Assembly: GCA_000708835.1 (NCBI GenBank)
Contig: DF236980.1
Coordinates: forward strand, 1 to 64,000
Source: Klebsormidium nitens
Lineage: Eukaryota > Plantae > Klebsormidiophyceae
Length of the DNA: 64,000 bases
Direction of reading: 5' to 3'
Part shown: positions 32,945 through 41,799 of the stretch, piece by piece
How positions within the stretch are numbered: the stretch's first letter is position 1
How the letters are laid out: each line of letters starts with the position of its first letter
Translations under genes and position numbers: made by a program
The notes under the pieces: generated by a model
Told to the model about the DNA's origin: nothing
What the model saw: only the letters and a program-made list of their open reading frames with translations
The model's database searches: none

Positions 32945-34760
32945 CTGCCAAATGTGCCTATAGAAGCAGAACGTCACTACGGTCTAATTTTCAGAGGAAA
33001 GGAAGTCCTCAGGCTAGGGTGGGGTCAGCAGAATTTCAAGCAATCACCCAGTCCTACAAACTCAGAACTTTGCAGATTCTTGACGGATGAGATGGCGGTG
33101 GGTTTACTTTACCTCTGATCTGCTAGTTTCCTAGATCCAACACCTCATTGGTTCACCGTCCTGTAATTAGCTATATGTAAACAGAGGAGAAGAAATTGGG
33201 GACTGCATTTGTAGGACAACTGTACATGAATTGTCGGTGATATCAAACTCTTAAGAGTGTCGTTGGAGAGAAGTCGCGAAGAACAAAGAGCTTGGACTAT
33301 TCAGCTTAAAATTTGACGTCTATGATGAAATGGTTTTGCTCTTGGCCCCTCCGCCATTGCATATGAACTGGTGATTACCCGTGTTGCTTTTGGTAACATT
33401 TGAAGATTCTGGGCTGCCGTTGACATCCATGCGAGCGCCCACGATTCAATGTCAGTGCTATGTACAGCTTCTTACAAGAGCTTGGTATGTGATCTATGTT
33501 GGCAGTCGACCGCAAAGAAACCCGGCCAAAGCAAACTAGTCCTCTCTTCATCTTGTCGCTGCCATTGCAAGAACGCTCATCGTTGCCAGGAGGAGTCTTG
33601 TACTTCATGACAATAGATTTGAGCGCCATGGATACTGGCCGCCGCTTATCTAGGTATACTGGGACTACACTTTTGGCAGGCATCCCATCCTTATCAGGGT
33701 TTTACCGTCGCACTTGCTCTACATGAGTGGAATTCCAATCACACAATCCACTTTCAGGCACTTATCACGCGATTCAAATACGCGTGCCGAAATCTAGGCC
33801 ATGGGGGTCATCCTTTATCCCTCCTTCGTCACAATTCTATACAAAGCGTCGAGACTCTCGCGCATCTGGCTGCTACACCCACTTTTCCAAAGTCCTTGGA
33901 TGGAGCAAAGCCGTCGCTAATTTGTGAGTCTTCAATTGAAAGGATTGTCGCATGATTTAGTGTACGTATGCTCACACAGTCCCTGCAACTTGCATATGGA
34001 CACACTTGAAAGTCACTGCATGCATGAGGCGCAGTACTTTGACACCAAATTCGGGGCAAGTGTCAATAAAAGGACTGTCGGACCACATTGGCGCCGGCAT
34101 GACGCGATTCTGGTACATATCTCAATCTCAATATTCCAGTCAAGCAGTTACATGAATGTTGATTCCATGGCAGCCTGAGAGGTCGGCACATCCCGGATGC
34201 CTGGCGTAGCATTCGCGTCATTACTGACAAAAACTCAACCAAAGCATAATACAACACTGGACATTGGCCCCAGTCGAGTCGATTATCAGGACGCTGGCTA
34301 GCTCTCGCCGGGTTTTAAAGTGTTATAGCTGCATACAGCGATGGACAGCCTTATGTTCGGTGGCAGCATTACACGCATATAATTGAAAAGACAGCTTCCG
34401 ACAGCTGCCACGATAATTTTGTGAAGCAACATTCGACTCACAGATCAACGATACAAATTGTTGACTTGTAAAAATAGCTCATGGCGGTCTTACGATTGTC
34501 AGTTCGGTACTATGCTAAGCTTCAACCTATCCCTACGCGATTTGACCACCCGTTTTGGGCGTCTGAGAACTACAAGCAACCTATCCCTATGCAATAGGAC
34601 GACACCTGAGTGGTGACCTCCTTCAACTATCACAAACATTTCTGCAAACAAGTAGAAGCTGGATTTGGGGCTGGCAAACCCATTTCTTTTGTGTCTTCTA
34701 ATAATTTTTGGCAAACAATCACTATCAACCCTACATCAATCATAGTTTATGACCTGCTCT

Positions 34761-36830
34761 CTAGTAGTACGCATCGTCATCGCTCCCAGACAGGCTAGCG
34801 GTCTCATCACTCTCCTCCTTGGCCGCCTCCCCCTCACTCTGAAACTCCCCGCCATCCGAGCCCGTGTCGCTCGAGTCCATCGCCGCATCACCAAAGTGCG
34901 AGTCGGAGTCACTGCCCGGCTCCTCCTCCCCAAACGGCAGGCGGTCGCCCTCGGACCACAGGTAGTGCGTCTTGATGTCCGAAGTCGCGAACCCGTTGAA
35001 GCTCGTGCCCGCCGCGAGGGTATACGCCCCCATGTTGGGGAACAGCAGCCAGTCGCCGACCTCCAGCTTCGGCAGCCACACGTCGGTCAGGACCTGGTCC
35101 AGCCCGTCGCACGTCGGCCCGAAGACCGTCGAACGGTACATCTTCTCATCGAGCAGGCGCAGGCCGCCGGACACGCGCAGTGGGCGAGCGGAGATGGTAG
35201 CGTGGTCGTAGAGGAGGCAGTTCATGGACCCGTACACGCCGTCGTTGATGTAGTACTCGTTGGCCTTGGTGTGCGCGTGGCGCAGCCCACGCAGGCGGCG
35301 CCCAAAGACGAGCGCGGCCAGCGTAGCAGGCGCCTCGGCGAAGTAGCGCCCAGGCTCGGCGATGACCTGCAGAGCGGAGGGGCAAGGATACAGGTCAGAA
35401 GTTGGTTCCGGAGGTAGAAAGCACAGATTAGTCGACGATTCATCATTGTCCGGTAAGATGGAGTAAAATGGAGCACACTGCACATCTGAAATACTGCGAA
35501 CGGCTTCTAATCTGCAGCGTCCAGTTTCCATAAGCCCTCAGGACTTCAACTTGAAAGTCTCTCAACAGCAGCGAAGAACGGAATGCTTCCAGGCGGCACT
35601 TCGCAGTCCTCACCTTGACCCCCTCCTCCTCGGGGAAGAACTTCTCCAGCGCCTTGTTGATCGCAGCCCCCGCCGCCGAGAACGTCAGCTTCCCGCCAAC
35701 CGAGAGCCCGCCTCCAATGTCCAGCACCTTCATCTTGGGCATACCCAGCCCCTCCGCCATCTCAAACACCAACTTCGCCGCCTTGATCGCCTCCACGAAC
35801 GACTGCGCGCTCGCAGCGCCGCTGCCCACGTGGAACGACACCCCGACGCAGCTCAGCCCCAGGCGCTTCGCAACCCTCAGCAGCGGCTCGCACTCGTCGA
35901 ACTCGGCGCCGTACTTGGACCCGAGGGGGCACTGCGCGCCAACGTCGTCCGCGCGGATGCGCAGCAGAAGCTCCGCGCCCGGGTGCACCTTCTTGATCTT
36001 GTAGAGCTCGTCCTCGGCGTCGAAGACGGTGAGCTTGACGCCGGTAGAGACAGCGTGGCGCAGGTGCGACTCCAGCTTGCACGGGTTGGCGTAGATGATG
36101 CGCTCAGGCCCGACGCCGGCGGCGGCAACGGCCTGCATCTCGGCGAGCGAGGCGCAGTCGAAGTTGGCGCCGAGGGCGGCGAGGACGGCCAGCAGGGCGG
36201 GGTCGCCGTTGCACTTGACAGCTGCAGGAAAAGGGTGGCACTTGATGAGAATTCTTGGATGCAGCTGAGAACCATGTAAGCACAGTGCTTAAAGGAGGTG
36301 ACATTCGTTGACAGCTAGGGAGCAGGAGAAAGCGACTGACAGCACGAAGGACGGGCGTTAAGGATACTGGAACCACTTGCAAAGTTGATTACTATTGTAG
36401 AATAGTTGAAAATTTCGTGACTTGCGCAGCCTGTTCAAAAAAGAAAACCTTTGATTCAAAGCCTGACAGAAGGGTAGCACAGACCAGCAAGTGCGGCATC
36501 CGTCCCTCCTAGCAACACCCAGCTCCTCTTAAGAGATGAGGCAACACCAGAAAAGACAACAAATCAACAACAGTCCTCACCATAGAAGGGCTCCACGCGA
36601 GGCATGGTGGTCGTCCATGCGTCGTACAGGCGCGCCACCATTCCCAGGTCGAACATCATGAAGGGCGCCTCCTGGCCGTTCTGCTTGATGAAGTTCTGCG
36701 CGTACTTGTCCACGTCCCTGGGACTTCCCACTGATGCCAGGGTAGGCTTGAAGGACGCGACGGCAGTAGCCACCTCGTCACCCAAGGGGGCCAGGGCCTC
36801 CCACAAATCGCCAGACCCGCCGTGCAGCTT
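34761..36830 (-). other. ODC: Ornithine decarboxylase module of the fusion gene (fold-type III PLP enzyme)
   Basis: Motifs PFY|AVKCN (PLP lysine, K468 in the fusion), [55 protein letters not shown] and MGAYT. Confidence 0.96.
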
Positions 36831-39054
36831 CTGTAGCCGAAAAAGGACGAGTGTGAGGTACAGTCTTCAACTCATAGGATCCCACAGAAGGGCTGTATAA
36901 ACAAGAGCTGCATGTTTCAGCAAGTGGGAACAAGCACCGCCTTGCCAGCTGGACAAACATAGCAACGATGACCAAGCATAGCAGACATCAGGAAGCTGGT
37001 AGTAAGCGGGAGCAGGTGAAAGAATCCTTGAGAAGATAGATGAGTAAGGAGGGCAGAAGAGTATGTAGCAGCACCTCACAAATTTGGCCCAGCGCTGATT
37101 GCGAATGTTACTACATGCAACCTGAAAATCTTCAACATGCAACCAGATCAATCGATCTGGCACAGGAAAAGGACCACAGTCTCACCTGCAGCTTCTCCTT
37201 GGCGAAGGCAGCCCTCTTCTTGGCAGCCAGCGCGTACAGCTTCTCCACCTCGCGGTCAGCAAACAGCGGCTCAGGGACGCACACCTCCACCTCAGCTGGT
37301 GCACTGCCGACGGCCTTGAAAGTGTGGAACACCAGGGCCGCTCCAAAGGCCATCTCCTGGCGGATGGTGCCGTCGCAGACGTAACCAGCGAAGGCCGGGG
37401 ATACGCCCCAGGCACCCGCCCCGGCTGCACCGACCTTGCCGTCAGCAGAGAGCGCAAGCGAGAAGCGCCCCGGGTTGAACACCCCGAGCACCTTCTGGAC
37501 CATCTCGTGGGGGGACTGCTCCTGGGGGGCGTACCCGCTCGCCTCAAAGCTGGCATAGGAGAAGGCGTCCTCGGGCGTGATGTGAATCGTGCTGAATGCC
37601 CGGTTCTCGATGCCGTTCATGGAGTAGCCGCAGGGCTCAAAGTCAAAGGCGTCAATCTCGGACCCGGGGAGAATGGTGTCGATCCCAGAGGCGACGGTCA
37701 TGGCCTTGGCGTCGGCGAAGCCGGCGGCCTTGAAGAACTGAGCAGCCTTGGTGCTGTCCAGCTTCTGCATGCACATCTCCAGGGTGAAGGTCGGCTCGGC
37801 GCCGGCCTGGTTTCCCGAGGAGGCGGCCTCGTAGACATGCCAGTTGGGAAACTGGTCCGGTGCGCCGAGGACGTAGGCCTTGCCGCCGGCCCCCAGGTGG
37901 CCAAAGTGCTGCTCCAGGAACTCAATCTCCTGAGCGAAGCTGCCGTGGGGGTAGGGCTGCAAGACAAGGAACCGCCGCAGTCAACATCTATGAATCAACA
38001 CGTTGCTTTCTGACTGACACAGCATCTCCACTTTCTCACCGAACAAGGGCTTTCAGGGGAAAGGGCTTGAAAAACAGAGGAGAGGAAACAAGTAGGGATG
38101 GCTACTTGAGAAGTAGGTCTACAACCGAGTTTTTAACAACTGAAAGACCACTGAAAACAAGATAGAAAAGTCCGCAACCAATACAACCAAGAGAAGTATG
38201 CCGGGAGGACATGTGCTCACAAAATGCAGCTCTGTTCCAATATCTTCACCAGCAGCATGAAACCAGACATATCCAGCATAACAATCCCAGAAGCAAACAG
38301 CAACCTGTCACCAAAAAATAATGAGGGTGGCATGATAAACTGCATACACCAAACCTGCAAAGAGGAAGGGTCTTCCTGTTCGGAGAGTGGTGCAGAATGA
38401 TAACATACACCGTTGCTCTATTACAAGAACTGCACCAAATCCTTACCTGAACTGCAGGGAAGTTGAAGGTCCCCCGGGTGTACTTGACGCGATGTTCCTT
38501 CAGGTCAAGCTCAGCAGCATGCTTGAGGAGGGTGGGAACGGCCTGCAGGAGGAACAGAGGGCGAGCTATGAGATACCAGATACGTGACAGAAGCAGCAAA
38601 AACCCAGTGTGCTTGAACAAAGCGGGGGTAGCATAGTCCTCACCATGCAAAGATCTCCACCAAATGCAGGCAAACCACTACCACTGGCAACACTCAACTC
38701 AATGTGCAAGCAAACAGAACATACATGGAGATGCAGACAATGCAGAGACGCAAGCTTTTCAAGAAAACAACTCACCTTGAGCAGAGCAGTCGTGCCGCAG
38801 GTCTTAATGACCAGCTTGAAGGGGTGGATGAAGAGGCTGGACTCTGAGAGCACGTACGAGTCAAACAGCTCGTTGCTGAGCTGAGACACGATAGTGCACT
38901 CAGCCAAAGTGAGGAGCTCGTCAATCTTGGCGCGGGGCATGTTGCGCAGACCGCGAGGAGAGCATGCTGCACTGGCAGGAGAAAACTCCACTTCCAGGCG
39001 CTTCTCGAAACCCTCAAACCCAGGGGCAGGGAGCATCATTGCGTCGGCACCCAT
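34761..39054 (-). CDS. Bifunctional S-adenosylmethionine decarboxylase - ornithine decarboxylase fusion proenzyme, 6 exons, 869 aa
   Basis: Exons 39054-38776, 38542-38447, 37956-37186, 36830-36581, 36221-35614, 35366-34761 (2610 nt). All introns are GT-AG and phase-consistent. The AdoMetDC exon ends CAG|GTGAGA (phase 0) and the next exon begins tttttcggctacAG|AAG (phase 0), joining ...AKEKLQ to KLHGGSGD... in frame. Confidence 0.85.
37186..39054 (-). other. SAMDC: AdoMetDC (SAMDC) module of the fusion gene, eukaryotic class 2 pyruvoyl enzyme
   Basis: Motifs [19 protein letters not shown] (self-cleavage E71/S72), [30 protein letters not shown] and YASFE. Confidence 0.97.
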
Positions 39055-39211
39055 TGTATGAGTGCGTGTACCTTTGACTATCTAGACGTGCGGCGCAGCG
39101 TGCTCTTTCCTAGGCAGGAGGGGTCGTCTGGACCTGTCTTATACTACTCGACAGCCCGGGCGTTTGCCAGTCTGCAATCCAGCTCCTTATCTAAAAGCTC
39201 CAGGAGGACTA

Positions 39212-39596
39212 TCAGGAGGGTGCCTTCAAGCACTGCAGCAAAAGGGGTAACGGTCAGCAGCACTCGCAAATGGTGGGTTTGTAAGGTAAGAGTCCTTTCT
39301 AGATCAGAAACAATCCACCTGCGTGCATGAAGTGTGCAGAGAGGGTACAGCCAAATGCGATATGCGAAGACGACAACCAAACAAACAGCATCTTTAGGTT
39401 TGCAATGAAACACCTAGCGCATGAACCATCTGCTAATCATTTGACACGCTGCTCTCTGTGTTGAATGACTTACGTTGCTATAAGCAGGAGAGCGGAACTT
39501 CACGACTCCTCCGTCGGGCCTGATATCCTCCAACACGTAACCAAGAGCGGGCTCGTACTGTGAATTACTTGAACTACTATTGTCCTTGCTCTCCAT
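39212..39596 (-). CDS. AdoMetDC leader peptide (conserved small uORF), spliced, 47 aa
   Basis: Exons 39596-39474 and 39232-39212 give MESKDNSSSSNSQYEPALGYVLEDIRPDGGVVKFRSPAYSN|CLKAPS*. This matches the plant AdoMetDC small uORF pattern MESK..SSSS..YE.PLGY.IED.RP.GG..KF.S..YSNC.K.PS. The stop lies 157 nt upstream of the main ATG. Confidence 0.93.
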
Positions 39597-41799
39597 GATT
39601 TTTACCTGCCACGGCAAATCGAGAACCAACATCAGCAGATGTGATAAAAATGGAACAAAGAAGTCATATTGAAGCCACACAACCTTTAACAACAACCGTC
39701 AACTGGTGTATGCCTTTCCCACCTGTCTTGTGTCACACCTCAAGAGTTTCACCTAAGCCTTCACTAGATCCGACAAAGACAATATGCCACAGCCCCTGGA
39801 ACAGCAGAAGTCCTCCACAAAACTTAGCGTGTGCTCAAGATGAGCTGAACCAACAAAAGCACTGGCACCATAATTGACCAATAATCCAAATTAATCCAGA
39901 TTTTTCCTCGAAGGCTTTAAGTTGGAGCATACTTGACCGCACCGCGGAAACAACTCCAACCATGCTGCAACCCTTGACAAGGTCCGACCGACAAAGATGG
40001 TGTGCATGGTCATCTGTATACCCTCAAACCCTTCCCGAGATGCTTGAATCTTGTCCCCGATTTGGATCCAGGTTTGCAAGAAAGCAGCTACAAACGCTCT
40101 CCACTGCTGGCTAATGTAAAGACTCTACTCCCAACCCTCAACAAGCTGACATAAACAAAGATCGGAGCATGCAAGACAACCTCCATCCATGCATTTTCAA
40201 CCCAGCCCCCAAGCAAGCATCTCAGAAGCACGGCATACAAAGAGCAAGCATCTGCAACTCACCAAGTTTGTAAGTTTTTTAGGGTTGAAGGGCTAAACGA
40301 CGCCAGAATTCTCGCTGGCAAGGTCTTGGTCAGGCCCGCTTCTTAGCAACTCAAAAAGATGACTGTATCTCGATTGATTCACTTCCTAAAAGCTCCTTCC
40401 ACGGATGGCAGAGGGTTTCAGAACGATTCAGCTTGCTGTTTGCTGATTGATGGTTGCAGGTTGCGGGCTTCGAGCGCCAGGAAGCAAGATTGCCGAAGAT
40501 GACTGCAGAAGAATGCTGAGAAGTAGTCCTTGTCGAAATGATGTTCTTGAGATTCATCAAGTTCGAACTTGTGGCCCTCTCGTCTCGATACAAGACACGC
40601 AACTCGTGCACCTGCAAACAGAAGTGAGAATGCCCCGTAGGCAGTCTGACGTTGTTTACATCCACTCCCATAGTTCAGCTAGAACCGCTTGTTCACATGC
40701 ATTCCCGCAGGCAAGACACGTGTGGTCAACCGGTACATACCCACCTACCTAGGTGTTCGCGACTAGGTTTTCCGGTACCGTTCGCATAGGGACATATGTT
40801 TGCCATAAGCAAACACTTAGACGTACCGACTGATCACACCGGGCATCCGAAGTGCCCTGTTTCTGCGTTCTAATTTGTCAACATTGGAGGCCCGGATGGT
40901 TATCTCCGAGCGGTCTGCAATCCAATAACGGGACTACGCTAGCAATAGCTAGTTCATAATACATACCGTATACCTACCACGTCCATTTGTCAGAATTCAA
41001 TCATCCACCACAAGTTCCCATCCTTGATTGGCAGCTGGCAGTCGGCCACGCTGGCTGCATATGGCTATGCGCGCGCATCTGTCCACTCTGGACCGTCCGA
41101 TGCTCCCGTATGCTTGGGGAGGTTTCTTCTGTACAAGAAAAGTAAAAGCCGTCCGATGTTCGACATTCCCACCGCCTGACTCGTCGATCGACGGCACCTG
41201 GGGCTCAAGATTTGCCCGTTGCATCTGGCCCACGTGGACGTTCGAAGCTTCTCCCCACGCTAGTCTCCTCGGTCGCTGTCTACGGTACCAATTTCGCAGC
41301 CATGAAGATCCAACCTTGGAATTTTCAAAGTTCAGAGCTCAGCGTTTTGCCTGATTCAGTGATTGACATGATGAGCGACAGCCTAGCTGCTGTGCTTTAC
41401 AAGGTCCCTAGGGAGCAGGGGGCAAGGTCGTCGCTTTCAATCGCACGAGGAAGCTGGTATAGGTAGCTCGTAGGAGCGGCTCTAGGGCGGCTGCGAGCCA
41501 GCTTTGGGCAAGAGCTTCAAGTCGACTGCAGAGGTTGTTTGTTGGACCGACATTTGTGGGGTCCTCGACAGGGGAGTCCTCGCCATTGAAAGAACCGCTG
41601 ACGAAGCCAGATAAACCCTGGGGATGGTCGAGTAGGATAGTGCAGAACAACTCCAAGGGCGTTTTGCCTTTAGCTTAGCAGTCTCCTATTTTGTTGTCTT
41701 TCAAGTCCCAAGTCTCCCCTTTAGCATTCTCCTATCTCGGAGCTTTTTATCTCTAAGAGAAGTCTAGGAGGCGAGCCACTGAGGACAGGAAGCGGTTCC

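Follow-up and report, generated by a model that had tools for sequence, protein, structure and literature searches.

The window analysed here, a stretch of 64,000 nucleotides from the streptophyte alga Klebsormidium nitens (positions 1 to 64,000 of contig DF236980.1, assembly GCA_000708835.1), carries on its minus strand a single gene that joins S-adenosylmethionine decarboxylase (AdoMetDC) in frame to ornithine decarboxylase (ODC). Assembled by script, the six coding exons between 39054 and 34761 come to 2610 nt, that is 869 codons and a TAG, with no internal stop, which bears out the single frame of 869 amino acids (aa) proposed in a first-pass annotation of the same DNA. The frame reads AdoMetDC, a linker of about 70 aa and ODC, every coding-exon border is GT..AG, and an upstream open reading frame (uORF) lies ahead of it on the same mRNA. 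The parts of the gene are given below in the order of transcription, together with the evidence for each; CDS stands for coding sequence, UTR for untranslated region and PLP for pyridoxal 5'-phosphate.

40264 to 40516, minus strand: 5'-UTR exon 1, its 5' end approximate, without ATG; X1, X9 and X13 RNA contigs run 219-253 nt past 39606 and map to 40264-40293 and onward.
39606 to 40263, minus strand: 5'-UTR intron, about 657 nt with a 1-nt ambiguity at its boundary; loose contig ends at 39606, GTGAGT after 40263 and CAG before 39605.
39474 to 39596, minus strand: uORF exon 1, 41 codons, its ATG being the first AUG of the mRNA; Pfam PF08132 match, on a contig shared with the main CDS.
39212 to 39232, minus strand: uORF exon 2, CLKAPS and TGA; joint 39232/39474 in X1, X9 and X13.
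38776 to 39054, minus strand: CDS exon 1, AdoMetDC N-terminus with FEGFEK, the LSESS processing site and KTCGTT; Pfam SAM_decarbox, alignments to potato 1mhm_B and human 1jl0.
38447 to 38542, minus strand: CDS exon 2, AdoMetDC aa 94-125; RNA joints 38541/38775 and 37956/38447.
37186 to 37956, minus strand: CDS exon 3, AdoMetDC core and C-terminus and the first part of the linker helix, ending in phase 0 at a GT donor without a stop; Pfam SAM_decarbox, potato 1mhm_A.
36831 to 37185, minus strand: intron 3, the fusion intron, 355 nt; skipped in four of four RNA runs.
36581 to 36830, minus strand: CDS exon 4, remaining linker and the ODC N-terminal segment up to PFY, ending in phase 1; ODC N-terminal block conserved in 12 fusions, model helices.
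35614 to 36221, minus strand: CDS exon 5, PLP-binding barrel of ODC with the PLP lysine K468 (36216-36214), HVGSG and DIGGG; Pfam Orn_Arg_deC_N, Trypanosoma brucei ODC 1f3t.
34761 to 35366, minus strand: CDS exon 6, MGAYT motif, C-terminal sheet domain of ODC, acidic Ser/Asp/Glu-rich tail (34955-34764) and TAG stop; Pfam Orn_DAP_Arg_deC, 1f3t.
34447 to 34760, minus strand: 3' UTR and poly(A) site; contigs stop at 34447, and X20 has 13 T beyond it, a poly(A) on the minus strand.

Reading frame and transcript

Central to the gene is the passage from exon 3 to exon 4. Exon 3 runs without a stop to the donor CAG/GTGAGA at 37186 in phase 0, and exon 4 opens at 36830, after a pyrimidine-rich tract and CAG, in the same phase; the donor, the 355-nt intron and the acceptor are thus as the first-pass annotation had read them. 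Its further claim, that the ODC exon lacks an in-frame ATG ahead of the ODC core and has a TGA some 40 nt upstream, also agrees with the sequence, in which the nearest in-frame stop 5' of exon 4 is the TGA at 36869-36867, 39 nt into intron 3, and exon 4 has no in-frame ATG before its codon 58 (36659), at the MMFDLG motif. The methionines of this motif are replaced in other species (FYVMDLG and similar among 12 fusions compared), so that the internal ATG is incidental. The junction of exons 4 and 5 restores the ODC signature PFYAVKCN. Base composition follows the same borders, with a GC content of 58-68% in exons and 45-51% in introns, intron 3 having 48% against 63-65% in the adjoining exons. 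Retention of intron 3 would, according to the list of open reading frames, add 17 codons before a TGA at 37134-37132.

Starts for ODC within intron 3 were also sought. Of all ATGs in the intron, listed by frame, not one opens a frame that stays in phase with exon 4, and the sole frame-0 ATG (36875) meets a TGA immediately. A candidate mini-exon, ATGTTGAAGATTTTCAG followed by GT at 37138, joins exon 4 out of frame and runs into a stop.

The window is matched by many RNA runs of one organism and partly by a 2012 run with a second organism label; the evidence used here consists of assembled contigs, which lose rare isoforms, from four runs of four studies under two organism labels, mapped on 34400-39750. 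The joint 36830/37186, which skips 355 nt between GT and AG on the minus strand, is present in all four runs, as is every other CDS joint that their contigs reach, and the spliced junction that the first-pass annotation had predicted is therefore found in RNA. Across 36906-37084, most of intron 3, depth is zero in the contigs of all four runs. Other introns of the same gene are covered by faint contigs at a depth of 4-6, which indicates that unspliced RNA is detectable when present. Neither polyadenylation within 36831-37185 nor a separate ODC start there, the combination named beforehand as speaking for two genes, is seen in these contigs.

A continuous cDNA from the uORF to 34761, which the first-pass annotation had proposed as a check, is represented by an assembled 3488-nt contig (X9). 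It starts at 34447, covers the six CDS exons and the two uORF exons as far as 39606, and continues for another 253 nt. These extra letters map to 40264 and upstream, and so define the 5'-UTR intron, and the T run with which an X20 contig terminates at 34447 marks the poly(A) site. As a separate observation, one X1 contig departs from the locus at 38494, inside exon 2, with 255 nt of sequence absent from the window; the probable cause is chimeric assembly or a trans-locus artefact, though a rare joint, alternative or in trans, may lie behind it.

This instance is already known: the annotation of the K. nitens genome made the fused gene model public. The 10.3-kb public locus around the gene (GCA_000708835.1, DF236980.1) matches the window letter for letter at the same coordinates, which bears out the streptophyte alga suspected in the first-pass annotation, and the 864-aa 'Ornithine decarboxylase-like protein' of NCBI and UniRef (P0161) is 100% identical to aa 6-869 of the present model. 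The public model begins at the second methionine cluster (M6), whereas ours begins at the first AUG after the uORF (39054; A at -3, G at +4). The name of the public entry conceals the AdoMetDC half; the entry has the same three Pfam domains, and the uORF appears in that annotation as an adjoining 80-aa 'gene' with PF08132. The sequence is also contained in the ESM Atlas, within a 77-member cluster carrying all three Pfam families.

The two enzyme halves, the linker and the leader

Pfam SAM_decarbox (PF01536) is matched by exon 1 (E 1e-32, 114 bits) and exon 3 (E 8e-56, 190 bits; cut-off 22), and the best match among solved AdoMetDC structures is the potato enzyme 1mhm (1mhm_A, 9e-53). In alignments, the stretch YVLSE/SS falls on the C-terminus of the potato beta chain and on the matching part of the human proenzyme 1jl0, and E71 (38844-38842) and S72 (38841-38839) are therefore the expected site of serinolysis; the exact alignment with the end of the potato chain places processing where the first-pass annotation had put it. 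The motifs FEG.EK, LSESS, KTCGT, PCGYS and H..TP do not vary in an alignment of 70 fusions. Among the best 120 matches of a search with this half there is no separate AdoMetDC of K. nitens, a result that speaks for that list and not for the whole genome.

The ODC half is recognised by Pfam in exon 5 (Orn_Arg_deC_N, PF02784; 2e-61, 208 bits) and exon 6 (Orn_DAP_Arg_deC, PF00278; 5e-19, 69 bits), and exon 4 alone has no Pfam match. T. brucei ODC 1f3t aligns with exon 5 at 3e-54, the PLP lysine falling on K69, and with exon 6 at 7e-35, and the half also aligns with human ODC. In the T. brucei numbering, K69, H197, G235-237, E274/R277, D332, C360/D361 and Y389 are all present. Across the 70 fusions the equivalents of K69, E94, R154, H197, GG, E274, R277, D361 and Y389 are invariant, and those of D88, D332 and C360 are conserved in at least 90%. 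Close homologues of this half include an arginine decarboxylase, that of a chlorovirus (2nv9), and its own substrate is predicted to be L-ornithine.

Between the halves the linker varies from 48 to 163 aa among species and is poorly conserved in sequence. Conservation resumes at about aa 420, some 45 aa before PFYAVKCN, and the first ODC strand of a structure model lies at about aa 412, from which it follows that about 50 aa of exon 4 are already N-terminal structure of ODC. The earlier description of an exon running through a linker of about 70 aa into a complete ODC needs refining on this point. The model, built with AlphaFold2 on the fusion alignment and numbered as P0161 (the 869-aa model minus five), has two confident domains and a mean predicted local distance difference test score (pLDDT) of 85. 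Its helices comprise a long one at 355-380 with weak support, others at 384-402 that are better supported and lead into ODC, and one at 414-428; the acidic tail is disordered from 809 (pLDDT below 40). Foldseek comparisons of the ODC domain with the human and T. brucei enzymes give template modelling (TM) scores of 0.88-0.95.

The uORF belongs to the plant AdoMetDC leader family and lies on the same mRNA as the fusion, its first exon matching Pfam AdoMetDC_leader (PF08132) at E 7.4e-16 and 58 bits (cut-off 25). It comprises 47 codons from the first AUG of the mRNA (39596), is split by a 241-nt intron (39473-39233) and stops 157 nt before the main ATG; its C-terminus is CLKAPS, with proline penultimate. 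Since no ATG occurs in the 5' exon (40264-40516), no 'tiny' uORF precedes it. In plants the AdoMetDC uORF acts in polyamine-responsive repression, the small uORF has a penultimate proline, and not every green alga has the tiny uORF (PMC2811004). The leader is 94% identical to that on L004, the mRNA of a Klebsormidium relative, and a peptide 69% identical to it is encoded about 430 nt upstream of the fusion reading frame of Marchantia polymorpha. In two Chlorokybus proteins (P0177 and P0011, Chlat1 models) a PF08132 peptide is annotated in frame at the N-terminus of the fusion enzyme, which is probably an artefact of the gene models, the uORF having been read into the CDS.

Distribution and ancestry of the fusion

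The impression of rarity given by the first-pass annotation needs correction: besides the public 864-aa model, the same arrangement is widespread in Viridiplantae, with liverworts, lycophytes and ferns among its holders. Queried with the AdoMetDC exon in phmmer, a set of 1.84 billion representatives yielded numerous close matches of 800-960 aa, and the ten long matches scanned all have SAM_decarbox, Orn_Arg_deC_N and Orn_DAP_Arg_deC in this order. Searching with the Mesotaenium fusion gave 318 matches, of which the best 120 all carry the three domains, so that at least 120 full-length proteins, named or unnamed, share the order. Among streptophyte algae the fusion is found in Mesotaenium, Spirogloea, Netrium, Closterium, Coleochaete, Klebsormidium, Chlorokybus and Mesostigma; among land plants in Marchantia, Riccia, Calypogeia, Selaginella, Adiantum, Ceratopteris, Psilotum and Pteridium; and among chlorophytes in Nephroselmis, Crustomastix, Mantoniella, Pyramimonas, Cymbomonas, Tetraselmis, Bryopsis, Neomeris, Trebouxia, Coccomyxa, Micractinium, Chlorella and Auxenochlorella. 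The groups represented include prasinophytes, trebouxiophytes, ulvophytes, Zygnematophyceae, liverworts, lycophytes (Selaginella) and ferns; no fusion from a seed plant, moss or hornwort is among the matches listed. The earlier statement that green algae, besides Plasmodium, have such fusions agrees with these proteins, and the proposed search of algae and bryophytes found the architecture in green algae and liverworts, each half being placed in a tree of its own.

Two instances from other species support the gene structure. The 859-aa fusion of M. polymorpha is a single intronless genomic reading frame in two assemblies. The metatranscriptome contig L004, from the Klebsormidium relative mentioned above (83% nucleotide and 86% aa identity), carries the uORF and an 868-aa reading frame and is colinear with the spliced K. 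nitens mRNA across the fusion junction.

Some database entries call for separate comment. Three-domain fusions of Trebouxia and Cymbomonas (P0191, P0192 and P0201) are named 'Mitochondrial 2-oxoadipate and 2-oxoglutarate transporter' at NCBI, evidently a propagated misannotation. A 925-aa fusion listed for the vampyrellid amoeba Leptophrys vorax (EukProt, P0181) is 49% identical to the Mesotaenium protein, and its source is likely contamination by algal prey rather than a fusion of a non-green organism.

Trees were built for both halves of 31 named fusions together with 14 stand-alone AdoMetDCs and 15 stand-alone ODCs obtained from domain-wise searches, the AdoMetDC tree being midpoint-rooted on green sequences only and the ODC tree rooted on animals. 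Both halves of the K. nitens protein lie, with the fusions of other Viridiplantae, where the species tree predicts. In the AdoMetDC tree the order of chlorophytes, Mesostigma with Chlorokybus, Klebsormidium, Coleochaete with zygnematophytes, and land plants is that of the species tree, and K. nitens falls within the streptophyte clade with a support of 99/97. The stand-alone AdoMetDCs of Chara, mosses, lycophytes, a fern and seed plants are nested among the fusions, and the well-supported branches require at least five changes of state. A single origin of the stand-alone AdoMetDCs is rejected by the approximately unbiased (AU) test (p-AU 1e-5), for a group, Chara included, that was defined after seeing the tree. 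'Solo' models from Marchantia paleacea, Calypogeia, Closterium NIES-53 and Mesostigma may be truncated annotations.

The ODC tree has fusions at the base of Viridiplantae. A separate 652-aa ODC of K. nitens (P0267) groups there with seed-plant ODCs and not with the fusion: it belongs to a stand-alone clade (88/83) with a Closterium ODC and those of Sphagnum, lycophytes and seed plants, which lies inside a 99/98 clade with the fusions of Klebsormidium, Coleochaete, zygnematophytes and land plants. P0267 also has an N-terminal extension of about 200 aa.

The branching of both trees suggests that the fusion is ancestral in the green lineage, in which case the stand-alone AdoMetDC and ODC of seed plants would be derived. 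On the simplest reading, an ODC-only duplicate would predate the divergence of Klebsormidium and would have been kept by seed plants, and AdoMetDC-only genes would have arisen by repeated loss of the ODC half. We lean slightly towards a joint account in which fusion and leader uORF are both ancestral in the green lineage and the separate genes of seed plants secondary, the stand-alone AdoMetDCs stemming from several losses of the ODC half. Seed plants would owe their ODC to a single ODC-only duplicate, already present beside the fusion when the lineages of Klebsormidium and land plants separated. The uORF would on this account have arisen as a brake on the two enzymes together, and K. nitens may rely on this gene for all of its AdoMetDC. 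The separate, uORF-controlled AdoMetDC gene of crops and Arabidopsis would probably descend from such a fusion.

Proposed working, alternatives and related systems

With its in-frame splice, its single transcript, intact catalytic motifs in both halves and wide conservation, the K. nitens gene is very probably a member of a green-lineage family of bifunctional polyamine genes, in which one mRNA carries the uORF and an 869-aa proenzyme. One promoter would give rise to one eight-exon mRNA, the first AUG of which opens the conserved 47-codon uORF, with the main reading frame 157 nt downstream. Self-cleavage of the proenzyme at E71/S72 would yield a beta chain (about 8 kDa) and an alpha chain headed by a pyruvoyl group, the latter still covalently joined to ODC (about 86 kDa) through the poorly conserved, partly helical linker. 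The ODC halves are expected to pair as an obligate head-to-tail dimer with shared active sites, and the resulting particle, like that of Plasmodium, would contain the AdoMetDC site and the ODC site twice each. At high polyamine levels the uORF, as a polyamine sensor, would repress translation of both activities together. Putrescine and decarboxylated S-adenosylmethionine, both substrates of spermidine synthase, would thus be made at a fixed stoichiometry under one control, the likely benefit being an equimolar, co-regulated supply of the two to that enzyme. Self-cleavage, dimer formation and throttling by the uORF are proposed because of the known chemistry of both families and the Plasmodium precedent.

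Several points weigh against this account. The predicted TM score (pTM) of the model is 0.58, and the mutual placement of the two domains is uncertain. The separate ODC P0267 is 55% identical to the fused ODC half, so the putrescine supply of K. nitens is not tied exclusively to the fusion gene. That the proenzyme processes itself, that the ODC halves dimerise, that the linker stays uncut in the cell and that ornithine is the preferred substrate is all inferred, and the open literature searched yielded no protein-level or enzymatic study of any green-lineage fusion. Finally, since assembled contigs drop rare isoforms, a minor AdoMetDC-only mRNA, with intron 3 retained or an early poly(A) site, is conceivable and could escape them.

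Such isoforms also bear on the idea that the locus holds two adjacent genes, AdoMetDC ending within intron 3 and ODC having its own promoter there, with the joined RNA a read-through product or an assembly chimera. Retention of the intron would indeed stop AdoMetDC after the 17 extra codons, and contigs can conceal rare forms, but a canonical phase-0 GT..AG splice recurs in four runs with zero depth over most of the intron, at a gene whose other introns do show faint pre-mRNA coverage. Moreover, the conserved N-terminus of ODC has no in-frame ATG and a stop 39 nt upstream, and the fusion is kept in at least 120 proteins and as a single intronless frame in Marchantia. Two genes are thereby already largely refuted, and we regard them as exceedingly improbable. 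It is nearly as hard to credit that the fusion is real with one half a pseudoenzyme that regulates the active one, in the manner of the trypanosomatid AdoMetDC prozyme or antizyme inhibitor. Dead paralogues that regulate polyamine enzymes are known (PMC5201418), and K. nitens has another ODC; however, both halves retain every catalytic and cofactor residue that was checked, the 70 fusions show little or no variation at these positions, and no stand-alone AdoMetDC of K. nitens stands among the best 120 matches.

Somewhat less remote, and still improbable, is that the protein is translated as a fusion and cut at the linker in vivo, so that the mature enzymes are separate and the fusion ensures co-expression only. 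The poor conservation of the linker, its range of 48-163 aa and the low confidence of part of it in the model would accommodate such a cut. On the other side, no protease site or precedent was identified, the helices at 384-402 are confidently modelled beside ODC, and it is established that the Plasmodium enzyme works as an intact bifunctional polypeptide.

The covalently joined bifunctional enzyme preferred here has a known counterpart in the bifunctional AdoMetDC/ODC of Plasmodium falciparum (Mueller et al. 2000, cited in PMC10216422). That enzyme likewise has an N-terminal AdoMetDC, a hinge and a C-terminal ODC, joins the same two rate-limiting steps and reportedly functions without being split. 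The parasite protein is far longer (about 1400 aa), with parasite-specific inserts, and we know of no plant-type uORF on it. A fusion of the same kind is said to have been noted in Micromonas, a prasinophyte and not a streptophyte, and Mantoniella, a mamiellophyte related to Micromonas, has one in our database search. The fusions of Marchantia polymorpha (P0158), Selaginella moellendorffii (P0160), Mesotaenium (P0002), Chlorokybus (P0177), Mantoniella (P0500) and Auxenochlorella ('DCA1', P0258) have the same domain order and conserved catalytic residues; they are 43-55% identical to that of K. nitens and differ in linker length and sequence. The uORF lies upstream of the fusion where this was checked, in Marchantia and in L004, and the Marchantia gene is without introns, whereas the K. 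nitens CDS has five. The stand-alone enzymes of seed plants (AdoMetDC as in potato 1mhm, and ODC) are about 50% identical to each K. nitens half, with a uORF of the same Pfam family, but are encoded by separate genes, and in the trees they nest among or beside the fusions.

The kind of fusion is thus known already, and what has been less described is its breadth in land plants and its apparent ancestral status; full-text literature searches turned up no open publication on such a fusion in an alga or plant. Usually described as peculiar to malaria parasites, the joined enzymes are standard across much of the green lineage, where a putatively polyamine-sensing uORF sits over both at once. The interest lies in the evolutionary reading and in the little-studied biochemistry of the green-lineage enzyme, and Marchantia, with its intronless gene, offers a tractable model for what covalent coupling serves. 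Independent bacterial analogues of this joining of polyamine steps are found in the ESM Atlas: in clusters of Actinomycetota an ODC-type PLP decarboxylase is combined with the prokaryotic AdoMet_dc domain (PF02675) in proteins of about 506 aa, or with a spermidine synthase domain in proteins of about 653 aa.

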